A stretch of 63,473 bases of DNA, filler included, from Pelomyxa schiedti (taxonomy: Eukaryota; Protista; Evosea): NCBI GenBank assembly GCA_020536535.1. It is 13 parts of 13 records of this genome, joined end to end, with 100 filler letters (N's around TTAATTAATTAA, not from the genome) between each part and the next. Parts side by side here need not be neighbours in the genome. Positions count along the whole stretch, not along the records: positions 34,158 to 47,318 come from JAHLWZ010000161.1; 12 more parts are not named here. The stretch is one strand, 5' to 3'. The notes under the pieces were generated by a model that saw only the letters and a list, made by a program, of their open reading frames with translations, made no database searches and was not told the DNA's origin. How positions within the stretch are numbered: position 1 is the stretch's first letter; each line of letters starts with the position of its first letter. This document shows, piece after piece, positions 34,250-48,800 of this stretch. The position numbers and the translations under genes are program-made.

Positions 34250-37200
34250 TCAAGAGGAAGACGTGGCAGTTGTTGGTTCAGTGTGATTGCGGTGGTCAGG
34301 AAACGCTGCTGCGATGTTGGCGAGGCACCTGCTGATGTGTCCGGTAACGTCGTCGTCAGTCGTGGGAGTGTTGTTGTTGCTGTTGTTGGTCAGGTCAGGT
34401 CCGGAATTTGTGAACACGATCTCGGCGCACGTCATCAACACTTTGTCAATTGCCGAGAATGACGGCCGATCGATCTCTGTGTGTGCGCGCGCGCGTTTGT
34501 GTGGAGTCAGTGAGAGGTGGCGAGGAGGGAAAGAACGGGAAGGAAAAAAAAACAAACCGAGGAGCGAGAGGCAGGATTCGACAACGAGGCAGAACAGACC
34601 AACGCACGCACGGTGCACGTTGTTCATCTTGGGCTCAGACCGTAACGCGGAAGTTATTGCAAGCTTCCGGCTGAGGCACTCCACAACGGGATAGTCTCCG
34701 ACGTCATCACAAAGCCGGTCCACTTCTGTGTGTGTGTGTATGTGTGTGTGTTTGTGTTAGGTGAGGAAGGGTTGGCTTTTATTGTTTACCCGCGATTTCC
34801 GGGGCTGAGAGTGATGCCCGCTGGACCCTCATCAATTCTGTTACTTGGGCACCGGACTTTGGCATCTTGACTGATGGAACTTCGCCTTGAAGAAGTTCAC
34901 TCAGCAAAACTGCAANNNNNNNNNNNNNNNNNNNNNNNNNNNNNNNNNNNNNNNNNNNNNNNNNNNNNNNNNNNNNNNNNNNNNNNNNNNNNNNNNNNNN
35001 NNNNNNNNNNNNNNNTACAAAAAAACCTCAACACAAACACACCCAAATGTATCCGTCCATTCCAAGATGAATAAAATACTTTGTGCCTCTTTGTTCTCCT
35101 TTGGTGCAGTTTCCTTCCCACCCACTGAAGGAAACAGTGGGTGTGGGCTGGGGTTGAGAAAAAAAAGGAGGGAATGGAGTGGGCAGAAGTGCAAACGGCA
35201 TTGGAGATCACGAAATCTTTGTTGGTCAGATGCTCTCTCATCACAAAAACTTTTCAGGTTCTTGGCACTTTCTTCCTCCAATGTTTTTATGTATGCCTCC
35301 AGCTCCATGAGTTCTTGAAAAAGGGGAAAAAAAAACCCCCAGTGAGGAGGGAGCCAATGATGAGTTCAACTGGAGGAGGAAGAAGGTGTGTTAAAACCCT
35401 TGTTCTTGGCAGTCATGTCAGACACGGTCTTTTCTTGCAACCTTTGGAGCTCCATCTGTGTGTATGCATGTTGTTAAGAGATTATTATTGCAGTCATTGT
35501 CAACACCAAGGCAAACAACAACAACACCAACACACACCTCTGAATTATGTTCCCCTTGATGATGTGCATTCACATGAATGAGAAACGCAAAAAAGAAAGA
35601 AGATCTGAAAGGAGAAGGAAGGAGGAAAGGAAAAGAGAGCACAAACACATTGTTGTTGAAGCTCACGGAATCTTTGTTGGTTGTCTGTATCTCTCTCTTC
35701 ATAGATTCGTTTCATTTCTTTAATTTGCATTTCATGTTGTTTTCTTTCTTCATGGAGAAGATTCAGGTTCTTTGCATTTTCTTCCTCCAATTGTGTGACT
35801 CTTGCCTTCAGTTCCGTGATCTCATCTTTTGAACACACAAAGTGCGTCGTTGGCATTTTCATTTGAGGGGAAGGGGTTTTTCACTAAACTCTTCATCTGC
35901 CTTGCCTCGATTTCCCAGCAGTCTCTCTCTTGTTTCCTGATGTTGTTGTTGTTGATGGTGTCACCTCCTTCGTTGAGAGCTTTGGGGACCACTTCTTTGC
36001 TGCTCCCCATTGTTGTTGTGGTTGTTGGTCTTGCAGTTGCTGGTTGTGGCTGTGGTTTTGGTGGGGTGAATGATGGTGGTGATGCCTCGTCATGTCTCAG
36101 ACACATGTCTTGGAACACTTGATGCACTTGCTCATTTGTTGAGCTCTCAAGTGCTGTTTTTCCCTCCATGTTCTGTGCCAACAGGAAAATTACAACACAT
36201 GTCAATCAAATAGGGGGGAAAACAACCTTGATGTGACTGCCAATACCCACACAAGACAGAAGTTGTTTCACAATTGCAACGTCTCCTTTTCTGCAGGCAA
36301 GATGAAGGGCAGTCTGAAAGAGAGAGACGAAAATAAGCTTTGTGTCAAACATATAAATGAAAGAAAACAAAGACTACTGAAGGGGGTGGGTACGTACATC
36401 ACCCTTTAAATTTGAAAGGGAGACCCCCAAAAAAAAATAAATGAGCAACACAACAAGAATAAGAAAGTTGTACTTGCTGAAAAATAAGAAGGTGAGAACA
36501 GGAAAGATTCAAGGAGTGGAGATCATACAATCTGCCACAGTGCAAAAGAGCAGAAACATCACGGAAAGTTAGAACAAAAGCTGCCAGGGAGTGGAGACTT
36601 ACTCCCTTATGGCAACAACAGTAACAAAAAGAATATAAAGTGTTGCATAGAAAAATTGAAGCAAGTCAGAAAATTTGATGAATAAACGTAATAAAAAGGG
36701 TTGGGAGCAGTTACACACAGACTGAACATGCCACATAGTGAAGCAAAGAGAGATGAATTGAAGCAAGTCAGAAAATTGAAGAATAAACGCAATAAGGAGC
36801 AGTTACGCACATGCTGAACATGCCACAGAGTGAAGCAAAGAGAGATAAATTGAAGTAAGTCAGAAAATTGAATAATAACACAATAAAAAGGGTTGGGAGC
36901 AGTTACACACAAGCTGAACATGCCACAGAGTGAACCAAAGAGAGATGAATTGAAGTAGGTCAGAAAATTGAATAATAACACAATAAAAAGGGTTGGGAGC
37001 AGTTACGCACAAACTGAACATGCCACAGAGTGAAGCAAAGAGAGATAAATTGAAGCAAGTCAGAAAATTGAAGAATAAACGCAATAAAAAGGGTTGGGAG
37101 CAGTTACGCACAAACTGAACATGCCACAGAGTGAAGTAAAGAGAGATAAGTTGAAACAGGTCAGAAAATTGAAGAGAAAACACAATAAAAAGGGTTGGGA

Positions 37201-38063
37201 GCAGTTACACACAGGCTGAACATGCCACAGAGTGAAGCAAAGAGAGATGAATTGAAGCAAGTCAGAAAATTGAAGAATAAACGCAATAAGGAGCAGTTAC
37301 ACACAAGCTGAACATTCCACAGAGTGAAGAAAAGAGAGATGGATTGAAGCAGGTCAGAAAATTGAAGAGAAAACACAATAAAAAGGGTTGGAAGCAGTTA
37401 CGCACAAACTGAACATGCCACAGAGTGAACCAAAGAGATGAATTGAAGCAAGTCAGAAAATTGAAGAGTAAACACAATAAAAAGGGTTGGGAGCAGTTAC
37501 GCACAGGCTGAACATGCCACAGAGTGAACCAAAGAGAGATGAATTGAAACAAGTCAGAAAATTGAAGAGTAAACGCAATAAAAGGATTGAGAGTTATGGC
37601 AGTACGTACAAGCTCCCCCTGGAATTACGTTTTTAGAGGAAAGGGAAGGAAAACATAATCAGGATAGTGTTACACACAATCTGTGAAGTGAGAGATACAA
37701 GTTTGTGAGTGAGTGAGCACCTCAAAAATAAGGGCCCTTATACCTGAGAATTGACATCGACATTCATTGACAACAGGAACTCAACGCACTGTGCTTTCCC
37801 TGACCCCGTGGCTGCATGCAACGCTGTCTGTGTGTGTGCGTGTGCCCGCCAAAGGAATTGTTGTCGTGTGTGAAAAAAAAAAAGGGTTGTCACGCAATTC
37901 ACACCACTTGTTCTCGTTGGCTGGAGACAGAGTTTAGAAGGTGGCGGTCGGCGGCCAGCAGACGCCGCAGTGCGTCACTGTCGCCATCACGCGCGGCCTG
38001 GAACCACCTGTAGGGTCCCACGCGTGGCCCGTTGCGTGACTTTGACGAAGTTGTTGTCATCAT
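34250..38063 (-). CDS. Ankyrin / coiled-coil / kinase gene, copy 1, with microexon-encoded ankyrin loop (kinase core hidden in gap 34916-35015)
   Basis: Predicted exons: 38063-37908 (…WFQAARDGDSDALRRLL…), 37827-37744 (TALHAATGSGKAQCVEFLLSMNVDVNSQ), 15 microexons, 36313-36227 (TALHLACRKGDVAIVKQLL…HIK), 36172 onward (NMEGKTALE…), coiled-coil exons, kinase C-terminus (RPSFSAI). All introns GT-AG. Confidence 0.85.
36650..37600 (-). repeat. Tandem array of about 9.5 units of 92-101 bp; each unit is an intron plus a 3-nt exon
   Basis: Unit on minus strand: GTGYGTAACTGCT...TTTTCTGAC...pyrimidine tract...TGTTCAG then NNT. Codons at 37505, 37406, 37305, 37213, 37112, 37011, 36911, 36811, 36719. Confidence 0.95.
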
Positions 38064-38319
38064 TTGAAGAAGTTGTTACTGCGTAGAATGATGCCAACTA
38101 GAGGCATCATCTGCAGTCACAGAAAAGAAACCCCGACGCCAAACCCGGTTCTGACGGACCTGAATCATGGTCTGGTGACAGCTGACGAATCTGAGTGAGT
38201 ATCTGAAGAAATCGCGGACTCGTCCAGGATCTCATATCTTTAGCTGGACCTCTATTGTTGATACTGAGGCACACGGAGATACCAGCATAGTGGCGAGAGA
38301 GAATCCGGCATGGTGGAAT

Positions 38320-38845
38320 TGTGATTGCACTACAAGAGTGATAATGCGGAATCGCGTTCTCAATCGGCATTTTCAAGGATGCCACCGGCACTGAAGTGGA
38401 CATTTCATTTCCGGCATTGGCAGCATGCATCCTGCAACAGGGTTAGCACGGAAATGATGGGAATCATGCACACAACACCCAGCAAGTGTTCTGGCAAACG
38501 CGGGAATGCTAAGTATGCAGAATCGTGTATTTATTATTGGTTTATTGGCTAATATTTGCGTTATATTAAGCAAATATATCTCATGACAAATACATACTGC
38601 TTAAGCAGTTAATGTTACTGGGAGAGCGAATTTCACTCTAAATGATATATTTAAAAATAATCATGGTAAACATTATTTTGAACTGAGGCATACATACCTA
38701 ATAATGTTATGGTTGCACTCTGTCTGTGCACACTGATCAACAAGCTACAAAGCTATGTATCAATTTCAGTTTGTCATAAAATCGGTTCATCAACCCTAAA
38801 TGATTTGTCAGTCCAGTCAATTCGAATTTAATTTATTACCTGAAC
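38320..38845 (+). repeat. Left arm of a long imperfect inverted repeat
   Basis: Reverse-complement similarity to 40445-41015, e.g. TTTGTCATAAAATYGGTTCATCAACCCTAA and TGATAATGCGGAATYGCGTTCTCAA. Confidence 0.8.
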
Positions 38846-38919
38846 CTATGTTTCACATTTCTGCACAGGGATTGCAGAACCCTCTGGATTATGTGACCCC
38901 ACAAACTAGACTGTCTGCA

Positions 38920-40204
38920 TCATCTCATGATGGATGTACAGCCTGAAAGATCTGGACACCAAGCCAGAATATATGATCCAGTATTCATATCATCTGGAGG
39001 CACCAGAATCTTCTGCATGAAGTTAATTTGGCATCTTTTTGAAAAGAATGGCATTACCTTGCTCAAATTGGAGGCAGTGCAAGATGATTCCACCATGGCG
39101 TTGGTGTTGTGGCCATCAACAGCCCGCTGCAAAAGTGAAATGCCTTTGGGGTAGTTTTGGAGCGAGCCAAAGCCATGGATCCTCCTACCCAAGTAACAGT
39201 GGGCAAGGTCACACATTGCATTGGTGTGTTTCGGTGATACCATCAATCGGTGACTCCCAATCTCAGCAGCTTTGTGGCATCTGAGATCTACACATTAGTC
39301 TCCCGGATGTGGGCTGTTTGCCTCGCACGAAAGTGGGGCTATGAAGTCCGAGGGGGAATTCACCAGAATCAACTTTCCTAATGAGATCCATGATGCAACT
39401 CGTAAGTACTTCCACGTTCCACGGCCAGGTGCAACAGAGACATCCCTTTGCGACTATCCTGTGGTAAACCATACTCTGGCCCCAGATAAGCATCAGCGAG
39501 TTTCACCATAGCTTGGGTGTTGTGGCCAGAAACAGCCTGAAGCAGCAACAGCGAAACACCTTTGTTGTGGTTTTGAGTCAACCCATACTTCGGCTCCAGG
39601 TAACCCTCGGCAAGAATCAGCATTGCCTCGGTGTTGTTTCTGGCAATGGCCCGCTCCAGCAGCAGCAACACACCTTCAGCGGGTCCTTTGCGGGGTACAG
39701 TATCAGGCAGGTATGTTGTCCCCAGGTAAAGACTTCACCATGGCTTTGGTGTTGTTTCCAGCAATGGCCTGCTGCAGAAGTGACATAGCCTTGGTGTAGT
39801 CTAAGAAAAAGACTCAGCCCGATGGCCTGTAACAGTCAGCTAGTTCACACATTGCGTCGGTATCACCTGCACCAACCTTAATGAAGAGATCCCTGAAATA
39901 CCTTGCGTCGTCACTTCCACGTGCCACAGCCTGTTGCAGCAGTGACATGCCTTTGCTGATGTCCTGTGTCAACCCGTACCTTGGTGCCAGGTAAGCCTCG
40001 GCGAGCTTAAACATCGCTTCGGCGTTGTTGCCGTTGACGGCTTGCTGCAGAAGCGACAGGCCCTTGGTGTAGCTCCCGGGGTCTTTCACGTCAAACTCGG
40101 TTGGGAGGTAGGACCGAGCGAGGTCGTACATTGCATTGCTGTCACCTTCACCAACTTTCTCCATGAGCTCCTCCATGTACATGGACTCGTTTGTGGTCGT
40201 CATC
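38920..40204 (-). pseudogene. Sel1-like repeat protein, disrupted
   Basis: Repeats AMYDLARSY, AMFKLAEAYL...GLTQD.SKGMSLLQQAV; in-frame TGA at 39814 and frameshifts downstream. Confidence 0.8.
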
Positions 40205-40444
40205 TTCGTCGCTCGAGCGAAGTGATGTTCCTTTGATGTGATGCTGAGTCTGATCAGCGGGAAACAAGAAAGCAATGGAAGGGAAAGACCACACGCTCCT
40301 CCTTCTTGAGATCAGAGATCCGTTCTGTTTCCCGTGCCTAGTGCCTCGTGCGTCATATCAGTTCATGTCCGTGTTGCATGGAGAATGTCGATGCGCGTTG
40401 TATGTTGTGTCGTTGTGTACTCCTTTCTATTTCTAAGCAATCCT

Positions 40445-41015
40445 TAAGGTAATCACTACTTGTAAATTAGAATTAACTAACAAATCAGTTAGGGTTGATG
40501 AACCAATTTTATGACAAACCTGGGGGTGAATTTGATACGTGGCTTTGTAGCTTGTTGATTGGTGTGCACGGACAGGATGCAACCAAAAAATTAGGTACAT
40601 ATTCCTAATAATAATAACAATAATCCCCATGTTTACTATGCCTATTTCATAGAAAATCTCTATATCGTAGAGTGGAATTCGCTTTCCAAGTACTTGACAG
40701 TTAATATTACACAAATACAAGCCAATCAACCAATAAATACAACTGAAAATGAATAAATAGAGCAGTAACAATGCTACACAGCTTTGGATGATTTGATTTC
40801 CAAGCTTCAAATTCACATATCTAGCATTCTTACAAACGCGCGAATTCCCCCATTCACTTGCCGGGTATTGTATGCATGATTCCCATCATTTCCGGACTAA
40901 TTGTGTTGCAGGATGCGTGCTGCCAGTGCCGGAAATGTCCGCTTCAGTGCCGGTAATCTCCAAAATGCCGGTTGAGAACGCAATTCCGCATTATCATATG
41001 CTACCACTATCACAG
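40445..41015 (-). repeat. Right arm of the long imperfect inverted repeat
   Basis: Matches 38320-38845 in reverse complement. Confidence 0.8.
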
Positions 41016-41236
41016 TGTTTCACGATCGTAACAATTTGCATGAAACTTGCTGAGCTCAGGAGGAAGAGCTCTCACAACACCGGCACACCAAATTCACACT
41101 CATGAATCCACACAGCATTCTGTAGGGATGAAGGGGTGTAGTGTACCACGAACCGATCGTACGAAAGGATAAGGGATTCTCTTAATTCTCGTTATCGTCT
41201 GTGTTGTGAGTGATTCGTCAATTTCTGTTCCCGTCG

Positions 41237-43674
41237 ATGTACTCCACTCCAGCACCCGACCGACAACAGCAATGTCGCCCGGGGGAGGCCGCCGCGGCCG
41301 GCCGGGATCGAGTGTTGTCCCTCTCGCGGGTGGTTTGGGACATGGTCGTCGTCCCCGGCTGGCTCGACACCGCCTACGTCCACCCCGACAGCGACGACGA
41401 CGGCAGCGATTGGTGCCGAGGCCACGTCGACGTGTTCCGGGCGGCCGAGGCGATGTTCCCCCTCGCGGCCCTCGCCTCCCGCCGCGTCCTCGCCCGCCCG
41501 CACGGCCACGCACCCGGCAGCCGAGGGTCCACCTGCGCCGCCATCGCCCTCGCCGCGAGGGCGCCGGCCCCCTCGTGCATCGCCTGGATATCGAACCACA
41601 GGGGCGAAACAACGGAAACAACAACGGAAACAACAGCAACAACTGCTGCTGATCAGGCTCAGCGGGAGGGGAAAGGCCTGCTGCAGCGGCAGCAGCAGCA
41701 GCACACACTCGGGATTGCTGTGAAGGAAGTGGCCGCGGTGGTGGCTGGGCTGTGCTGGGGGGGTCACTTGCGGGCAGCCCGTGGGCTGCTTGGCGACGGC
41801 GATAGAGATAGAGATAGAGGTGGTGGCGTGATTCCCTCCTCCTCTGACAATGAGTGCTGTTGTTGTGGTGGTGGTGGTTATGGCACTTTGCCGATGCTGT
41901 GGGATGGTCGGTGCGTGGCCACGTGGAAGGCCGCTGATGATGTTGTTGCCGGCAACAATGATAGTGGGGATGATGATGTGGGTGCTGGCGGGGGAGGGGT
42001 TCTCAGGAGGAGGGTGATCGAGTACCTGAGGGCATCGTGTGGCTCGATTCCTGTGGTTTATTTCGTGTATAGGTCCGACGACGTGGACGTGGCCCAGTGG
42101 CTGCTCTCTGTTCTTGGAATTGGGAAGAATGATGCACCGTGGATCCTGTACGAATTCCTGTCTCTGCTGGGTGAGAAAAGCCAAGTTTTCAGGTGGCTAT
42201 TTGATGAGTTTCACTTGGAAAGTAGCATCGGTATCCCCGAGCTTCAGGATCTCTTTATGTCGTGCGTGAGAGGCAACTGCCCAGCGAACTCGAGGTGGTT
42301 CATTGAGAGGAAATTTCCTGTGCCTTGCAGCAGAGTGGATACAGTGCTTTGGCTCATCAGGAACGCACATGCATCTGTGGAAGATTGCCAGTTTTTTGAA
42401 GCTGATATTCGCAGCCTCAGCAGTGTCGATGACAACCTCTTGAGAGGTATGCAGAACCCAGACGTTGCCAAGTGGGTTCTGACAACTTTGTCAACCCTCA
42501 ATCCCAGTCAGGAGACTTTGAGTTGTCTCTGCGGAAATCTTGGCAACGTGGAGTTTGCTCGGTGGTTGGTGAAGGTGAAGCAATTTTCACCGACTCCAGA
42601 ATCGTTTTTATTGGCTTGTTCCACGTTCAGCAGCGTTTCTTCTTCATGCTCCTCCTCCTCATCATCATCTCTTCCCAGGTGGCTTTCAAAGAGGGTGACA
42701 CTTGCTCCAAGTGACATCACCAAAGGCTTGATCAATGCACTGCAGCACAGCAACATTGAAGTTGCAGATTGGTTGGATGGCACCTTCCATGTGATGGATG
42801 ACATAAATTCCAAACCAGAGATGTGTATTGAAAGCACGCTGGCCGAGTTGTGCTCTGGTTCTAATTCTAGTTGGTCTCTGTGGCAGGGTTTGAAGTGGTT
42901 CATACAGCACGTCCCACCACCTTTGAAAGAGAGCTGCACCAGCGATGTCATTTCACATTTGATCAGTAACCACCGCTCAGAAGCTCTTGCATTTCTTCTG
43001 GAAACATTCCCCCCAACTTGTGCACCTATTCCAGGTAATCCCAGTCAAATGAAGCTCATCCTGGTTGGATTGATGGGTGACCTGAGAACACTGCAGCACC
43101 TCCTCCAGTTTTTTGTTGGTGAGGATTTGTACTCGTCTGTTCTGACTCCAGAGTTCATGGGAGAGTGCCTGATAGACCCACAAGCATCACCATCAAGCAA
43201 AACCGTAAAGTGGGTGATTCACAAGTTCAACCTCCAGTATTCCCACATCAAAGGTGGTGATAATAGCAATACCCTCTTGTTCTGGCTTCTCTCCAGGGGA
43301 AAGCACGGCTGTGCACAGTGGCTTCTTGAGACCTTTGACATCCCCCTCGATGATGTATGTATTGTATGGACCGTAATGTTCATAATTTGACTAAAAATCA
43401 AAAAAAAAAATAACAGGTTGTTGACAGGCTCACTGCTGTGCAGCAATGCCCATACATAAATCTTGCAGGGTGGCAGATGATTCTGAGGCACTATGGTAGC
43501 GCCATCAACGCCACACTCGTTCGATCCTTCCTGCCTGGGATTGTTTCAGCATCACCTCACGTAACACTGTTCATGATGCACAGGTTTGGAATCACCATTG
43601 ATGAGGTATGTGAGCTCCTTGCTTATTCACCAGATGGAACAAAGATCTGGTTGCACCTGCATGGAAAACCATAG
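41237..43674 (+). CDS. Ankyrin-like repeat protein (SRVVWD family), 2 exons
   Basis: Long ORF with LSRVVWDMVVVPGW, LCWGGHLRAA, SSKTVKWVIHKFNL, GCAQWLLETFDI; intron from about 43355 (GTATGT) to about 43417 (CAG). Confidence 0.85.
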
Positions 43675-43817: not shown

Positions 43818-46800
43818 TCAAGAGGAAGACGTGGCAGTTGTTGGTTCTGCGTGATTGCGGTGGTCAGGGAACCCTGCTGCGACGATGTTGGCGAGGCGCC
43901 TGCTGATGTGTCCGGTAACGTCGTCGTCAGTCGTGGGAGTGTTGTTGTTGCTGTTGTTGGTTAGGTCAGGTCCGGAATTTGTGAACACGATCTCGGCGCA
44001 CGTCATCAACACTTTGTCAATTGCCGAGAATGACGGCCGATCGATCTCTGTGTGTGCGCGCGCGCGCGTTTGTGTGGAGTCAGTGAGAGGTGGCGAGGAG
44101 GGAAAGAACGGGAAGGAAAAAAAACGAACCGAGGAGCGAGAGGCAGGATTCGACAACGAGGCAGAACAGACCCACGCACGCACCGTGCACGTTGTTCATC
44201 TTGGGCTCAGACCGTAACGCGGAAGTTATTGCAAGCTTCCGGCTGAGGCACTCCACAACGGGATAATCTCCCACGTCATCACAAAGCCGGTCCACTTCTG
44301 TGTGTGTGTGTGTGTGTATGTGTGTGTTTGTGTTAGGTGAGGAAGGGTTGGCTTTTATTGTTTACCCGCAATTTCCGGGGCTGAGAGTGATGCCCGCTGG
44401 ACCCTCATCAATTCTGTTACTTGGGCACCGGACTTTGGCATCTTGACTGATGGAACTTCGCCTTGAAGAAGTTCACTCAGCAAAACTGCAAACTCCCACA
44501 TGTCTCCTTTTGAATGCGTTCGTTTATGTGTAGTGGTGGTGCGGAATTAATGTTGAGTGAACTATCAACAGGATGAACACAACAACATCCAAATACCTTG
44601 AATTCCGTAATGCCCAGTGTGCATCTGTGGTGGCAAGTAAATCGGTGTTCCGGCCCCATTCGTAAAACTCCCAAGCAGAGCTGGTTTACTCCCGCGGCTG
44701 ATTTGGTGCTGCTGGAGGGCTCTTGATACTCCTTCATTTTCAGTTGGTTGAGTTGAGCGTGTTGAGGCGCGTGTGTGTGTGTCAATTGCAGAAGTACCAA
44801 AGTCAGTTATTTTTGGAGTTCCGAAAGAATCAAGGAGAACATTGTTGCTGCTCAGGTCCCGGTGCATGTAGTTCCTCCTGTGTTTTTTATTATTTTTATT
44901 CTTGCAATATTTTTTTTATGTATTTTTTAGGCCAATATTATTATTATTATTAATTCAACGTAAATGATATTATTTTTAAAAAAAGAGTGCAAGAAGAACT
45001 GAAATTGAATGAAACCTGTGAAGTGCAGTCATTCCTTTGGCAATTCCGGAAGAAACTGCCACAACTTCCATGAATGTCAACTTTTTCTAATAATTATTAT
45101 TAATCTATGTATGCATTTCGTGATTCATATNNNNNNNNNNNNNNNNNNNNNNNNNNNNNNNNNNNNNNNNNNNNNNNNNNNNNNNNNNNNNNNNNNNNNN
45201 NNNNNNNNNNNNNNNNNNNNNNNNNNNNNNTGAAACCTGTGAAGTGCAGTCATTCCTTTGGCAATTCCGGAAGAAACTGCCACAACTTCCATGAATGTCA
45301 ACTTTTTCTAATAATTATTATTAATCTATGTATGCATTTCGTGATTCATATTTACAATTTGAGTGAGAGTCTAACAAGTCAAACAAAGTGGGAGGAAGAG
45401 GGGTGCAAAAAAAAAAAACAAACATGTTGAAGGAGCTGCCTGAGACTCATTTCCATGAGTTCAGACACGATCCAGAGCGACCCTGTGCTCGTGATGCAAG
45501 TTCCAAGGCATCTCACAATGTTTGGGTGCCTCAAGCTTGACGAAACCTGGTTGGAGTTGATGGATCGTGAATTTTTAGAATGCAAGATGATCATTCTCTC
45601 ACTCACCAGAGCTTCCTGCTGAAACTTGGTGATGTTGAACTCAGACTTGATGGCTTCGTGAAGTGCTTTAATTGCCACAAACGTTGGTGTTCTTCTTTCT
45701 GATGAGGATGATGAAGAAGAGGAGGAGGATGAGGAAGTGGTCATTGCGTTGTGATCACAATGGAAGGTGCACTTGAAAACAGTTCCATACGATCCGACTC
45801 CAAGTGTGGAAACAACTTTCAGGTCTTTCTCTTGGATTGACATGGTTGATTTGATTCGAACCTTGATTTGAACAACAACTCCGTTTCTGCTGCCGCTGCC
45901 GCCGCCGCTGTCTTGTTGTTGCTGTCGCTGTTGAATATCACCCAAGGTAATGGATGAATCGGTCGGCAACAGTTCCTCAGAGTTGTTGTTTTCTGAACCG
46001 ACAGTGAAAATCACTTGTTGTGTTGGTTCAACTCCAAACTTCCTTGAAACAATAAGCTTCACAATCTTTTTTGGCAAAAAAAACCAGTCAGAAAGAAAAA
46101 ACCGGGGGAGCTTCACAAGAGAGGAAAGCACCATTTGAAGGGGACAGGATCCACACACAATTTCATCAAAAGAGGGAAGATCCTCAAACGAGATCCTGAG
46201 TTGTGATTGCTTGCATCTGTTGGTCTTATTGTTTTCAGGAAGGAGAATGTTGCGCCACATGCCTTCTCCTTGTTCAACATGTGATATCACATGATTTGCG
46301 TCTGTTTGGCAGAATTAGAATTGTTGGTGTGGTGCTGTGTTATTATATGCTGCATGTATGTTGTGGGGGTGTGGGCTGGGGTTGAGAAAAAAAAAGGAGG
46401 GGATGGAGTGTGTGATTGGGCAGAAAGCACAAACAGCATTGGAGATCACGAAATCTTTGTTGGTCAGATGCTCTCTCGTCACAAAAACTTTTCAGGTTCT
46501 TCGCACTTTCTTCCTCCAATGTTGTTATGTATGCCTCCAGCTCCATGAGTTCTGCTTTTGGAAAAAGGGGAAAAAAAANNNNNNNNNNNNNNNNNNNNNN
46601 NNNNNNNNNNNNNNNNNNNNNNNNNNNNNNNNNNNNNNNNNNNNNNNNNNNNNNNNNNNNNNNNNNNNNNNNNNNNNNTGTTGGTCAGATGCTCTCTCGT
46701 CACAAAAACTTTTCAGGTTCTTCGCACTTTCTTCCTCCAATGTTGTTATGTATGCCTCCAGCTCCATGAGTTCTGCTTTTGGAAAAAGGGGAAAAAAAAC

Positions 46801-48800
46801 CCCCAGTGAGGAGGGAGCCAATGATGAGTTCAACTGGAGGAGCAAGAAGGTGTGTTAAAACCCTTGTTCTTGGCAGTCATGTCGGACACGGTCTTTTCTT
46901 GCAACCTTTGGAGATCCATCTGTGTGTATGCATGTTGTTAAGAGATTATTATTGCAGTCATTGTCAACACCAAGGCAAACAACAACAACAACAACACACA
47001 CCTCTGAATTATGTTCCCCTTGATGATGTGCATTCACATGAATGAGAAACGCAAAAAAGAAAGAAGATATGAAAGGAGAAGGAAGGAGGAAAGGGGAGAG
47101 CACAAACACATTGTTGTTGAAGCTCACGGAATCTTTGTTGGTTGTCTGTTTCTCTTTCTTCATAGACTCGCTTCATTTCTTTAATTCTTTGTTGAGTGGT
47201 CGCATGTTGTTTTCTTTCTTCATGGAGAAGATTCAGGTTCTTTGCGTTTTCTTCCTCCAATTGTGTGATTCTTGCCTTCAGTTCCGTGATCTCATCTTTT
47301 GAACACGCAAAGTGCGTCNNNNNNNNNNNNNNNNNNNNNNNNNNNNNNNNNNNNNNNNNNNNTTAATTAATTAANNNNNNNNNNNNNNNNNNNNNNNNNN
47401 NNNNNNNNNNNNNNNNNNCTTTGTGTTTTCTTCCTCCAATTGTGTGATTCTTGCCTTCAGTTCCGTGATCTCATCTTTTGAACACAAAGTGCGTTTGCAT
47501 TTTCATTTGAGGGGAAGGGGTTTTTCACTAAACTCTTCAGCTGCCTTGCCTTGAATTCCCAGCAGTCTCTCTCTTGTTTCCTGATGTTGTTGTTGATGGT
47601 GTCACCACCTTCATCAAGAGCTCTGGGTAGCACTTTGCTGGTCCCCATTGTTGTGATACGTCTTGCAGTTGTTGGTGGTGGATGTGGTTTTGGTGGGGTG
47701 GGTGATGATGGTGATGTCTTATTTGGAGCAGAGGGTGGGCTCAGATGTGATTGCCGTTGTTGTTGGGCTGTTTCGGGAGAGGTGACTGCCTGCGTTGTTG
47801 ATGATGTTGTGGCTGGACACACAGCTTGGAACACTTGACGCACTTTATCATTTTCTGAGCTCTCAAGTGCTGTTTTTCCCTTCTTGTTCTGTGCCAACAG
47901 GAATTACAACACATGTCAATCAAAAAGGGGGGAAACCAACCTTGATGTGACTGCCAATACCCACACAAGACAGAAGTTGTTCCACAATTGTAACGTTTCC
48001 TTGTCTGCAGGCAAGATGAAGTGCCGTCTGAGAGAGAGAGACGAAAATTAAGTTTCGGGTCAGGCATCAAATAAAGTAAAGGAAACAAAGGATATTTGGG
48101 GGGGGGGGGGGGGGGGGGGCACATACATCACCCTTTCAATTTGAAAGGGAGACCCCCAAAATATATGAGTAATACAGCAAGAACAAGAAAAAAAGTAGTA
48201 CTTCCTGAAAAATAAGAAGGTGAGCACAGGCAATATTCAAGGAGTGGAGTTCATACAATCTGCAGCAGTGCAAAATATCAGAAAAATCGTGGAAAGTTAG
48301 AACAAAAGCTGCCAAGGAGTGTATACTTACTCCCTTGTGGCAATAAAAGGATCAAAGTATCCAACAAACGAGGGAAATTGAAGCAAGTCAGAAAATTGAT
48401 GAATAAACGCATTAAAAAGGGTTGGGGGCAGTTACACACAAACTGAACATGCCACAGAGCAAAGTGAAGAGAGAGAAATTGAAGCAAGTCAGAAAATTGA
48501 TGAATAAACACGATAAAAGGGGTTGGGAGCAGTTACACACAAGCTGAACATGCCACAGAGCAAAGAAAAGAGAGAGAAATTGAAGCAAGTCAGAAAATTG
48601 ATGAATAAACACGATAAAAGGGGTTGGGAGCAGTTACACACTCCCTGAGTTTATCACAGAGAGAAGCAAAGAGAGAAAAATTGAAGCAAGTCAGAAAATT
48701 GATGAATAAACACGATAAAAGGGGTTGGGAGCAGTTACACACAAGCTGAACATGCCACAGAGCAAAGTGAAGAGAGAGAAATTGAAGCAAGTCAGAAAAC
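43818..48800 (-). CDS. Ankyrin / coiled-coil / possible ubiquitin-like / TKL-type kinase gene, copy 2 (5' end in gap; spans several gaps)
   Basis: LGVGSYGTV, VAIK, LRHPNIV, MHRDLSSNNVLL, KITDFG, GTPIYLPPQ; ankyrin exon 48027-47941 TALHLACRQGNVTIVEQLL preceded by microexons. Confidence 0.85.
48375..48800 (-). repeat. Second intron-plus-codon tandem array (at least 4 units of 101 bp, cut by gap)
   Basis: Same unit; codons at 48743, 48642, 48541, 48440. Confidence 0.9.

Follow-up and report, generated by a model that had tools for sequence, protein, structure and literature searches.

Arrays of putative single-codon exons in the beta-hairpin of an ankyrin gene family of Pelomyxa schiedti

An ankyrin gene of the anaerobic amoeba Pelomyxa schiedti carries between two of its ankyrin exons an array of 15 cassettes of 3, 6 or 9 nt. 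Every cassette is framed by an AG and a GT, and the introns separating the cassettes measure 52-113 nt. The gene lies on the minus strand of the window, the whole analysed stretch of 63,473 nucleotides (13 parts of assembly GCA_020536535.1), in the part taken from JAHLWZ010000161.1. At least 17 arrays occupy the same ankyrin beta-hairpin: that of the window gene and 16 of paralogues, 13 from fetched paralogous loci and three on ankyrin-SAM(-U-box) genes. The explanation favoured here takes the cassettes as genuine spliceosomal microexons and the hairpin loop as diversified in the DNA, as evident from the comparison of arrays, and presumably also in the RNA by skipping; we estimate its probability at about 0.6. 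The segments had been proposed as coding microexons of the hairpin from the window sequence, a proposal supported by the frame and splice sites kept in 17 arrays, the pattern of selection and a CDR3-like composition.

The arrays and their genes

The window gene comprises the following parts:

37907..38063, minus: exon 1, N-terminal capping ankyrin repeat (open reading frame; start codon putative, splice boundary approximate)
37744..37827, minus: exon 2, an ankyrin repeat that stops directly in front of the beta-hairpin (Pfam Ank, E 8e-6)
37678..37680, minus: head cassette 1, one codon, Ile (AG/GT borders; Ile in 9 of 13 arrays)
37610..37618, minus: head cassette 2, 9 nt, Gly-Glu-Leu (first codon almost constant, second one variable)
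36719..37507, minus: nine hypervariable single-codon cassettes, at 37505, 37406, 37305, 37213, 37112, 37011, 36911, 36811 and 36719
36603..36605, minus: tail cassette 1, Gly (the same in all 11 paralogues of the alignment)
36529..36531, minus: tail cassette 2, Ile (likewise the same in all 11)
36474..36476, minus: tail cassette 3, Gln in the window gene, Glu in most paralogues
36398..36403, minus: tail cassette 4, 6 nt, Gly-Asp (opens the ankyrin GxTxLH motif; paralogue variants synonymous only)
36227..36313, minus: exon 3, next ankyrin repeat (Pfam Ank, E 7e-6; NCBI model P0001 begins here)
35201..36172, minus: downstream exons with the last ankyrin element, a Pro/Thr-rich linker and a predicted coiled coil (tblastn to P0001 and P0007)
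34253..34913, minus: end of a protein-kinase domain, with the C-terminal region (tblastn match to residues 571-741 of P0007)

All 15 segments named in the sequence-only reading were present at their positions with AG and GT borders, and all are multiples of three and free of stop codons. The canonical length of the hairpin gap (x-x-x-G-D, five residues), also claimed there, was borne out by Pfam Ank PF00023: the flanking exons match profile positions 4-30 (exon 2) and 4-23 (exon 3), which leaves a canonical gap of five residues ending in Gly-Asp. The coding strand of the 1430-nt interval is strongly pyrimidine-rich and contains 26 AG dinucleotides. Thirteen of the 17 isolated AGs (76 %) have a GT exactly 3 nt later, compared with a mean of 6 % and a maximum of 21 % in 200 dinucleotide shuffles. 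The nine middle cassettes, from 37505 to 36719, are copies of a tandem unit of about 98 nt (period 101, 88 % match), and each stands at the end of a repeated intron that has a branch-point motif, a pyrimidine tract and an AG. As unit copies they are not independent events, and the window alone therefore leaves room for an inert minisatellite. An internal AG in the 9-nt cassette could yield a 3-nt form.

The arrays share a constant plan. They open with a single head codon, in most cases Ile, and a 9-nt cassette whose first codon is Gly; between 4 and 24 middle codons come next, and Gly, Ile, Glu and Gly-Asp close the series. In 14 arrays 223 of 223 cassettes were in frame with their splice sites and stop-free (194 of 3 nt, 16 of 6 nt, 13 of 9 nt); ordinary introns of the family genes were in phase 0 in 31 of 80 cases only. 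Across the arrays, 190 of 256 isolated AGs had a GT at distance 3, compared with about 5 % in shuffles, and the 3-nt spacing and the splice sites were kept even where unit introns differ by 22-30 %. Avoidance of stop codons in the cassettes reached P 0.0015 under positional independence, but only P 0.16 when conditioned on the third base. The minimal array, L007a, consists of Asp, His, Phe and Gly-Asp, exactly the canonical hairpin length with the canonical Asp first. Dead cassettes that had lost the AG were seen in L001, L008, L009a and a truncated copy in L007. Exon 2 is frameshifted in L001 as well; its frame is intact in 12 of the 13 arrays having this exon. When all loci were scanned blindly on both strands, the detector found the arrays again, with a background of two small clusters only. 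Four matches from a pattern scan of metagenome contigs were rejected as chance occurrences in GC-rich bacterial genes. Protein searches revealed no relative outside P. schiedti, and DNA runs presented the family as multi-copy.

The annotated protein of the window gene, KAH3766294.1 (Pelo_1839), was matched by exon search; its model begins at exon 3 and omits the array and the two upstream ankyrin exons. Every gene model fetched starts inside or after the array. Exon 1, absent from NCBI model P0001, has homologous exons in L003, L004, L005 and L010. The rest of the kinase domain is missing across an N gap (34916-35015), thus its link to the window gene is putative. The full design in paralogues is ankyrin repeats, Pro/Thr linker, coiled coil and protein kinase (Pfam kinase domain at residues 361-609 of P0007), with ankyrin repeats and kinase combined in one gene in L003 and L005-L010. 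In the Pfam search of the family, Ank was combined either with a kinase or with SAM/U-box, and no NACHT domain was detected. Three array ankyrin genes ending in SAM and/or U-box lie in L016 (4541-8543, 13105-15224 and 15394-18061); each is annotated as two models, and they are clustered with intronless ankyrin-kinases.

The surroundings of the window gene hold further features. A second family paralogue on the minus strand (43818-47318) has a coiled coil, an intact kinase and the C-terminus; the contig ends before its ankyrin part and any array are reached. Long imperfect inverted repeats, six arm pairs of 76-96 % complementarity at about 38339-38844 and 40444-40996, surround a Sel1-repeat gene whose coding sequence is split over several frames (38339-40996). 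This structure lies immediately upstream of the array gene and resembles a foldback or TIR element with a captured gene. An intronless ORF of 726 aa on the plus strand (41210-43390) has a weak ankyrin-like match at its end only, and similar open frames seem to adjoin paralogues, e.g., at L007 5100-7385.

Selection and turnover of the cassettes

Head and tail cassettes differ from the middle ones in their evolution. Tail codons of 11 paralogues had pairwise differences of 3.6, 3.6 and 7.3 % at positions 1-3 versus 28 % in the aligned introns, in a set whose splice dinucleotides are invariant by construction. In middle codons, positions 1 and 2 took 6.4 and 5.0 times the parsimony steps of flanking intron columns and position 3 took 1.9 times (leave-one-out trees, eight arrays); in every one of the eight, positions 1 and 2 ranked highest or nearly so. 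Nearest unit pairs showed 74 amino-acid-changing and 0 synonymous codon differences, although units of an array share descent and such counts overstate independence. Tyrosine makes up 16 % of the middle codons versus 1 % in family proteins, and Gly, Leu, Phe and Asp are also enriched. A composition rich in Tyr, Gly and the like recalls antibody CDR-H3. In a paralogous DNA contig, four of seven differences fall in head cassette 2, which covers 9 of 157 nt (P 2e-4). These patterns support purifying selection on head and tail cassettes and diversifying selection on the middle ones. In exon 2 of the paralogues (window 37744-37827), the residues after TALH vary as well, at helix positions that are randomised in DARPins.

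Of 134 units, 89 have their closest counterpart in sequence within their own array. The arrays L007b and L009b have flanks of 95-98 % identity, yet cassette number and sequence differ; array lengths were taken from an assembly of amplified single-cell DNA, and both amplification and short-read assembly may alter tandem repeats. At the level of the assembled sequence, these comparisons demonstrate a diversification in the DNA by gain, loss and homogenisation of units, a level beyond the skipping proposed in the sequence-only reading. Conservation of frame and splice sites, the selection pattern and the minimal array with its canonical loop argue together that the cassettes are almost surely translated.

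In the proposed mechanism, the protein is a cytoplasmic sensor whose ankyrin repeats are followed by a coiled coil and then a kinase or a SAM/U-box module, and the cassettes encode the beta-hairpin that links two of the repeats. The conserved head and tail cassettes would build the stem of a long loop and the single-codon middle cassettes its hypervariable tip, where selection favours amino-acid change. The repeated introns of about 100 nt may act as homology arms for unequal crossing-over or gene conversion, by which single codons would be added, dropped or swapped without frameshift; because such an intron pads each codon, turnover would proceed one codon at a time.

Splice signals and the competing readings

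Introns are frequent in P. schiedti, with 7.4 per gene and 98 % GT-AG borders (PMC8887013). The cassettes, all shorter than 30 nt, are surrounded by GT-AG introns with branch motif and pyrimidine tract. Their donors are nearer to the U1 consensus (185 of 223) than ordinary donors (13 of 80), and each repeat intron has a branch motif about 50 nt from the donor. The last base of the cassettes is T or A in 211 of 223 cases; among ordinary exons, 51 of 80 have a terminal G. A GTRYGT-like donor motif compensates for the T/A ends, which may be due to a constraint on the splicing of exons of 3 nt. Recursive or nested (stwintron-like) splicing was rejected as an explanation of the array, since it would place no selection on the three bases in between.

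The single-cell RNA run X4 (Logan contigs) contained downstream exons and two unspliced array fragments; contigs were absent over 36146-36991 and 37274-38100, i.e., the ankyrin exons had no coverage. RNA contigs of close paralogues had two downstream introns spliced (joints 35825-35890 and 35455-35538), thus the family is transcribed. One contig kept the intron 35555-35648 while its next intron was spliced, so the library holds partly spliced transcripts. A DNA joint 36697-37629, considered as a paralogue without middle units, was dropped, as only 26 letters lay on one side of the repeat.

For the RNA level, partial skipping is proposed to give each gene a set of in-frame loops, because the junctions are in phase 0 and stop-free, with near-identical splice sites. 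Each intron should be removable singly, as it combines a strong donor with a separate branch motif some 50 nt away, and competition among near-identical sites makes partial skipping likely. The computed maximum by skipping is 312 distinct peptides for the window gene and reaches millions for the longest array.

A serious rival, which we regard as less likely, is the constitutive inclusion of all cassettes: each gene would then encode a single long loop, with 13-33 residues joining the flanking exons as in a natural LoopDARPin, and only DNA turnover and selection across the family would create diversity. Strong donors with own branch motifs fit an efficient full inclusion, head and tail are both conserved, and DNA turnover alone explains the introns between single codons. 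Long loops are evidently tolerated, as an intronless relative has a 10-residue insertion at the same hairpin. However, up to 30 consecutive 3-nt exons among near-identical sites would be demanding for the spliceosome, and the one known parallel, the nank genes of Tuber, is described as alternatively spliced in papers citing the original work.

An improbable reading is a Dscam-like mutual exclusion of the middle cassettes, in which one of n is chosen and the loop has a fixed length and one variable residue. Equal-length tandem cassettes between a fixed head and tail would suit such a choice, and adjacent identical residues were slightly rarer than in permutations (10 versus 14.2, P 0.13). A steric block is not expected from a donor-to-branch distance of about 50 nt, and no local RNA structure was found around the cassettes (z -0.6 to 0.5); moreover, the same codon is repeated in many arrays (L010: 5 distinct of 16), which would be wasteful for one-of-n. 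Hardly credible is an inert minisatellite, in which the middle part derives from one intron-plus-microexon unit and the tail cassettes alone are used to give the canonical loop: tandem duplication would copy splice signals automatically, the tail alone has the canonical length and the RNA run held unspliced array fragments, but splice sites and 3-nt spacing persist despite 22-30 % intron divergence, codon positions 1-2 outpace the surrounding intron, against neutrality, and the head cassettes are also conserved.

Parallels and biological meaning

The sequence-only reading had regarded the arrangement as undescribed, which does not apply to its kind: the NACHT-ANK (nank) genes of Tuber melanosporum have alternatively spliced codon-sized microexons, according to accounts of the 2012 report (PMID 22289772) in later papers (PMC4986451, PMC3689799, PMC10197012). 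The truffle family of these accounts and that of Pelomyxa are both expanded ankyrin families of putative non-self sensors, with tens of 3-bp exons in the truffle and codon-sized exons in 17 arrays in Pelomyxa. They differ in that the truffle is a fungus with NACHT proteins, whereas Pelomyxa belongs to the Amoebozoa and has ankyrin-kinase and ankyrin-SAM(-U-box) proteins. Alternative splicing is reported there, while the Pelomyxa array is known from genomic sequence. The Pelomyxa arrays fill one beta-hairpin, with positive selection and repeat homogenisation. The Ectocarpus receptors resemble the family as candidate pathogen receptors with gene birth and death, diversifying selection and DNA-level exon shuffling in the binding domain; there, one exon is one whole repeat, in Pelomyxa one exon is one residue inside a loop. 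The micro-exon genes of Schistosoma encode secreted proteins and consist almost wholly of exons of 6-36 nt. Like the arrays, they contain series of symmetric 3n microexons, which can be skipped without loss of frame, but they have no ankyrin scaffold and no single-codon array in one loop. The exon clusters of Dscam1 are long and mutually exclusive, with docking-selector RNA pairing. Tandemly duplicated cassettes diversify a recognition surface in both; those of Pelomyxa are single-codon, showed no local RNA structure and have a permissive donor-branch spacing. LoopDARPins, with an engineered CDR-H3-like loop in an ankyrin scaffold and wider binding (PMC9257619), would have their natural counterpart in the Pelomyxa array. 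A literature search found no paper on Pelomyxa together with microexons. From the truffle precedent, the lack of relatives outside P. schiedti in our searches and this literature result, the arrays appear as a new variation on a very rare arrangement, new in the Amoebozoa and probably convergent with the truffle case.

A sensing role is likely in view of family expansion, selection, composition and effector swapping. The proteins may serve the non-self recognition of symbionts, prey or parasites and signal via the kinase or ubiquitin-ligase part. That a single-celled amoeba makes an antibody-like repertoire, with at least 17 ankyrin sensors, hundreds to millions of loops each via skipping and a rapid reshuffling of the DNA, evolved independently of the truffle, has in our judgement an even chance. 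P. schiedti hosts several prokaryotic endosymbionts (PMC10579272), and the arrays suggest that such a protist has a generator of diversity which varies a binding loop at the resolution of single codons. Microexon-array ankyrins are a gene class that annotation splits or truncates. They offer a natural test of the spliceosome on up to 30 consecutive 3-nt exons, and with codon-sized exon arrays in the ankyrin sensors of a second, distant lineage, the truffle case would become a convergent solution rather than a curiosity.
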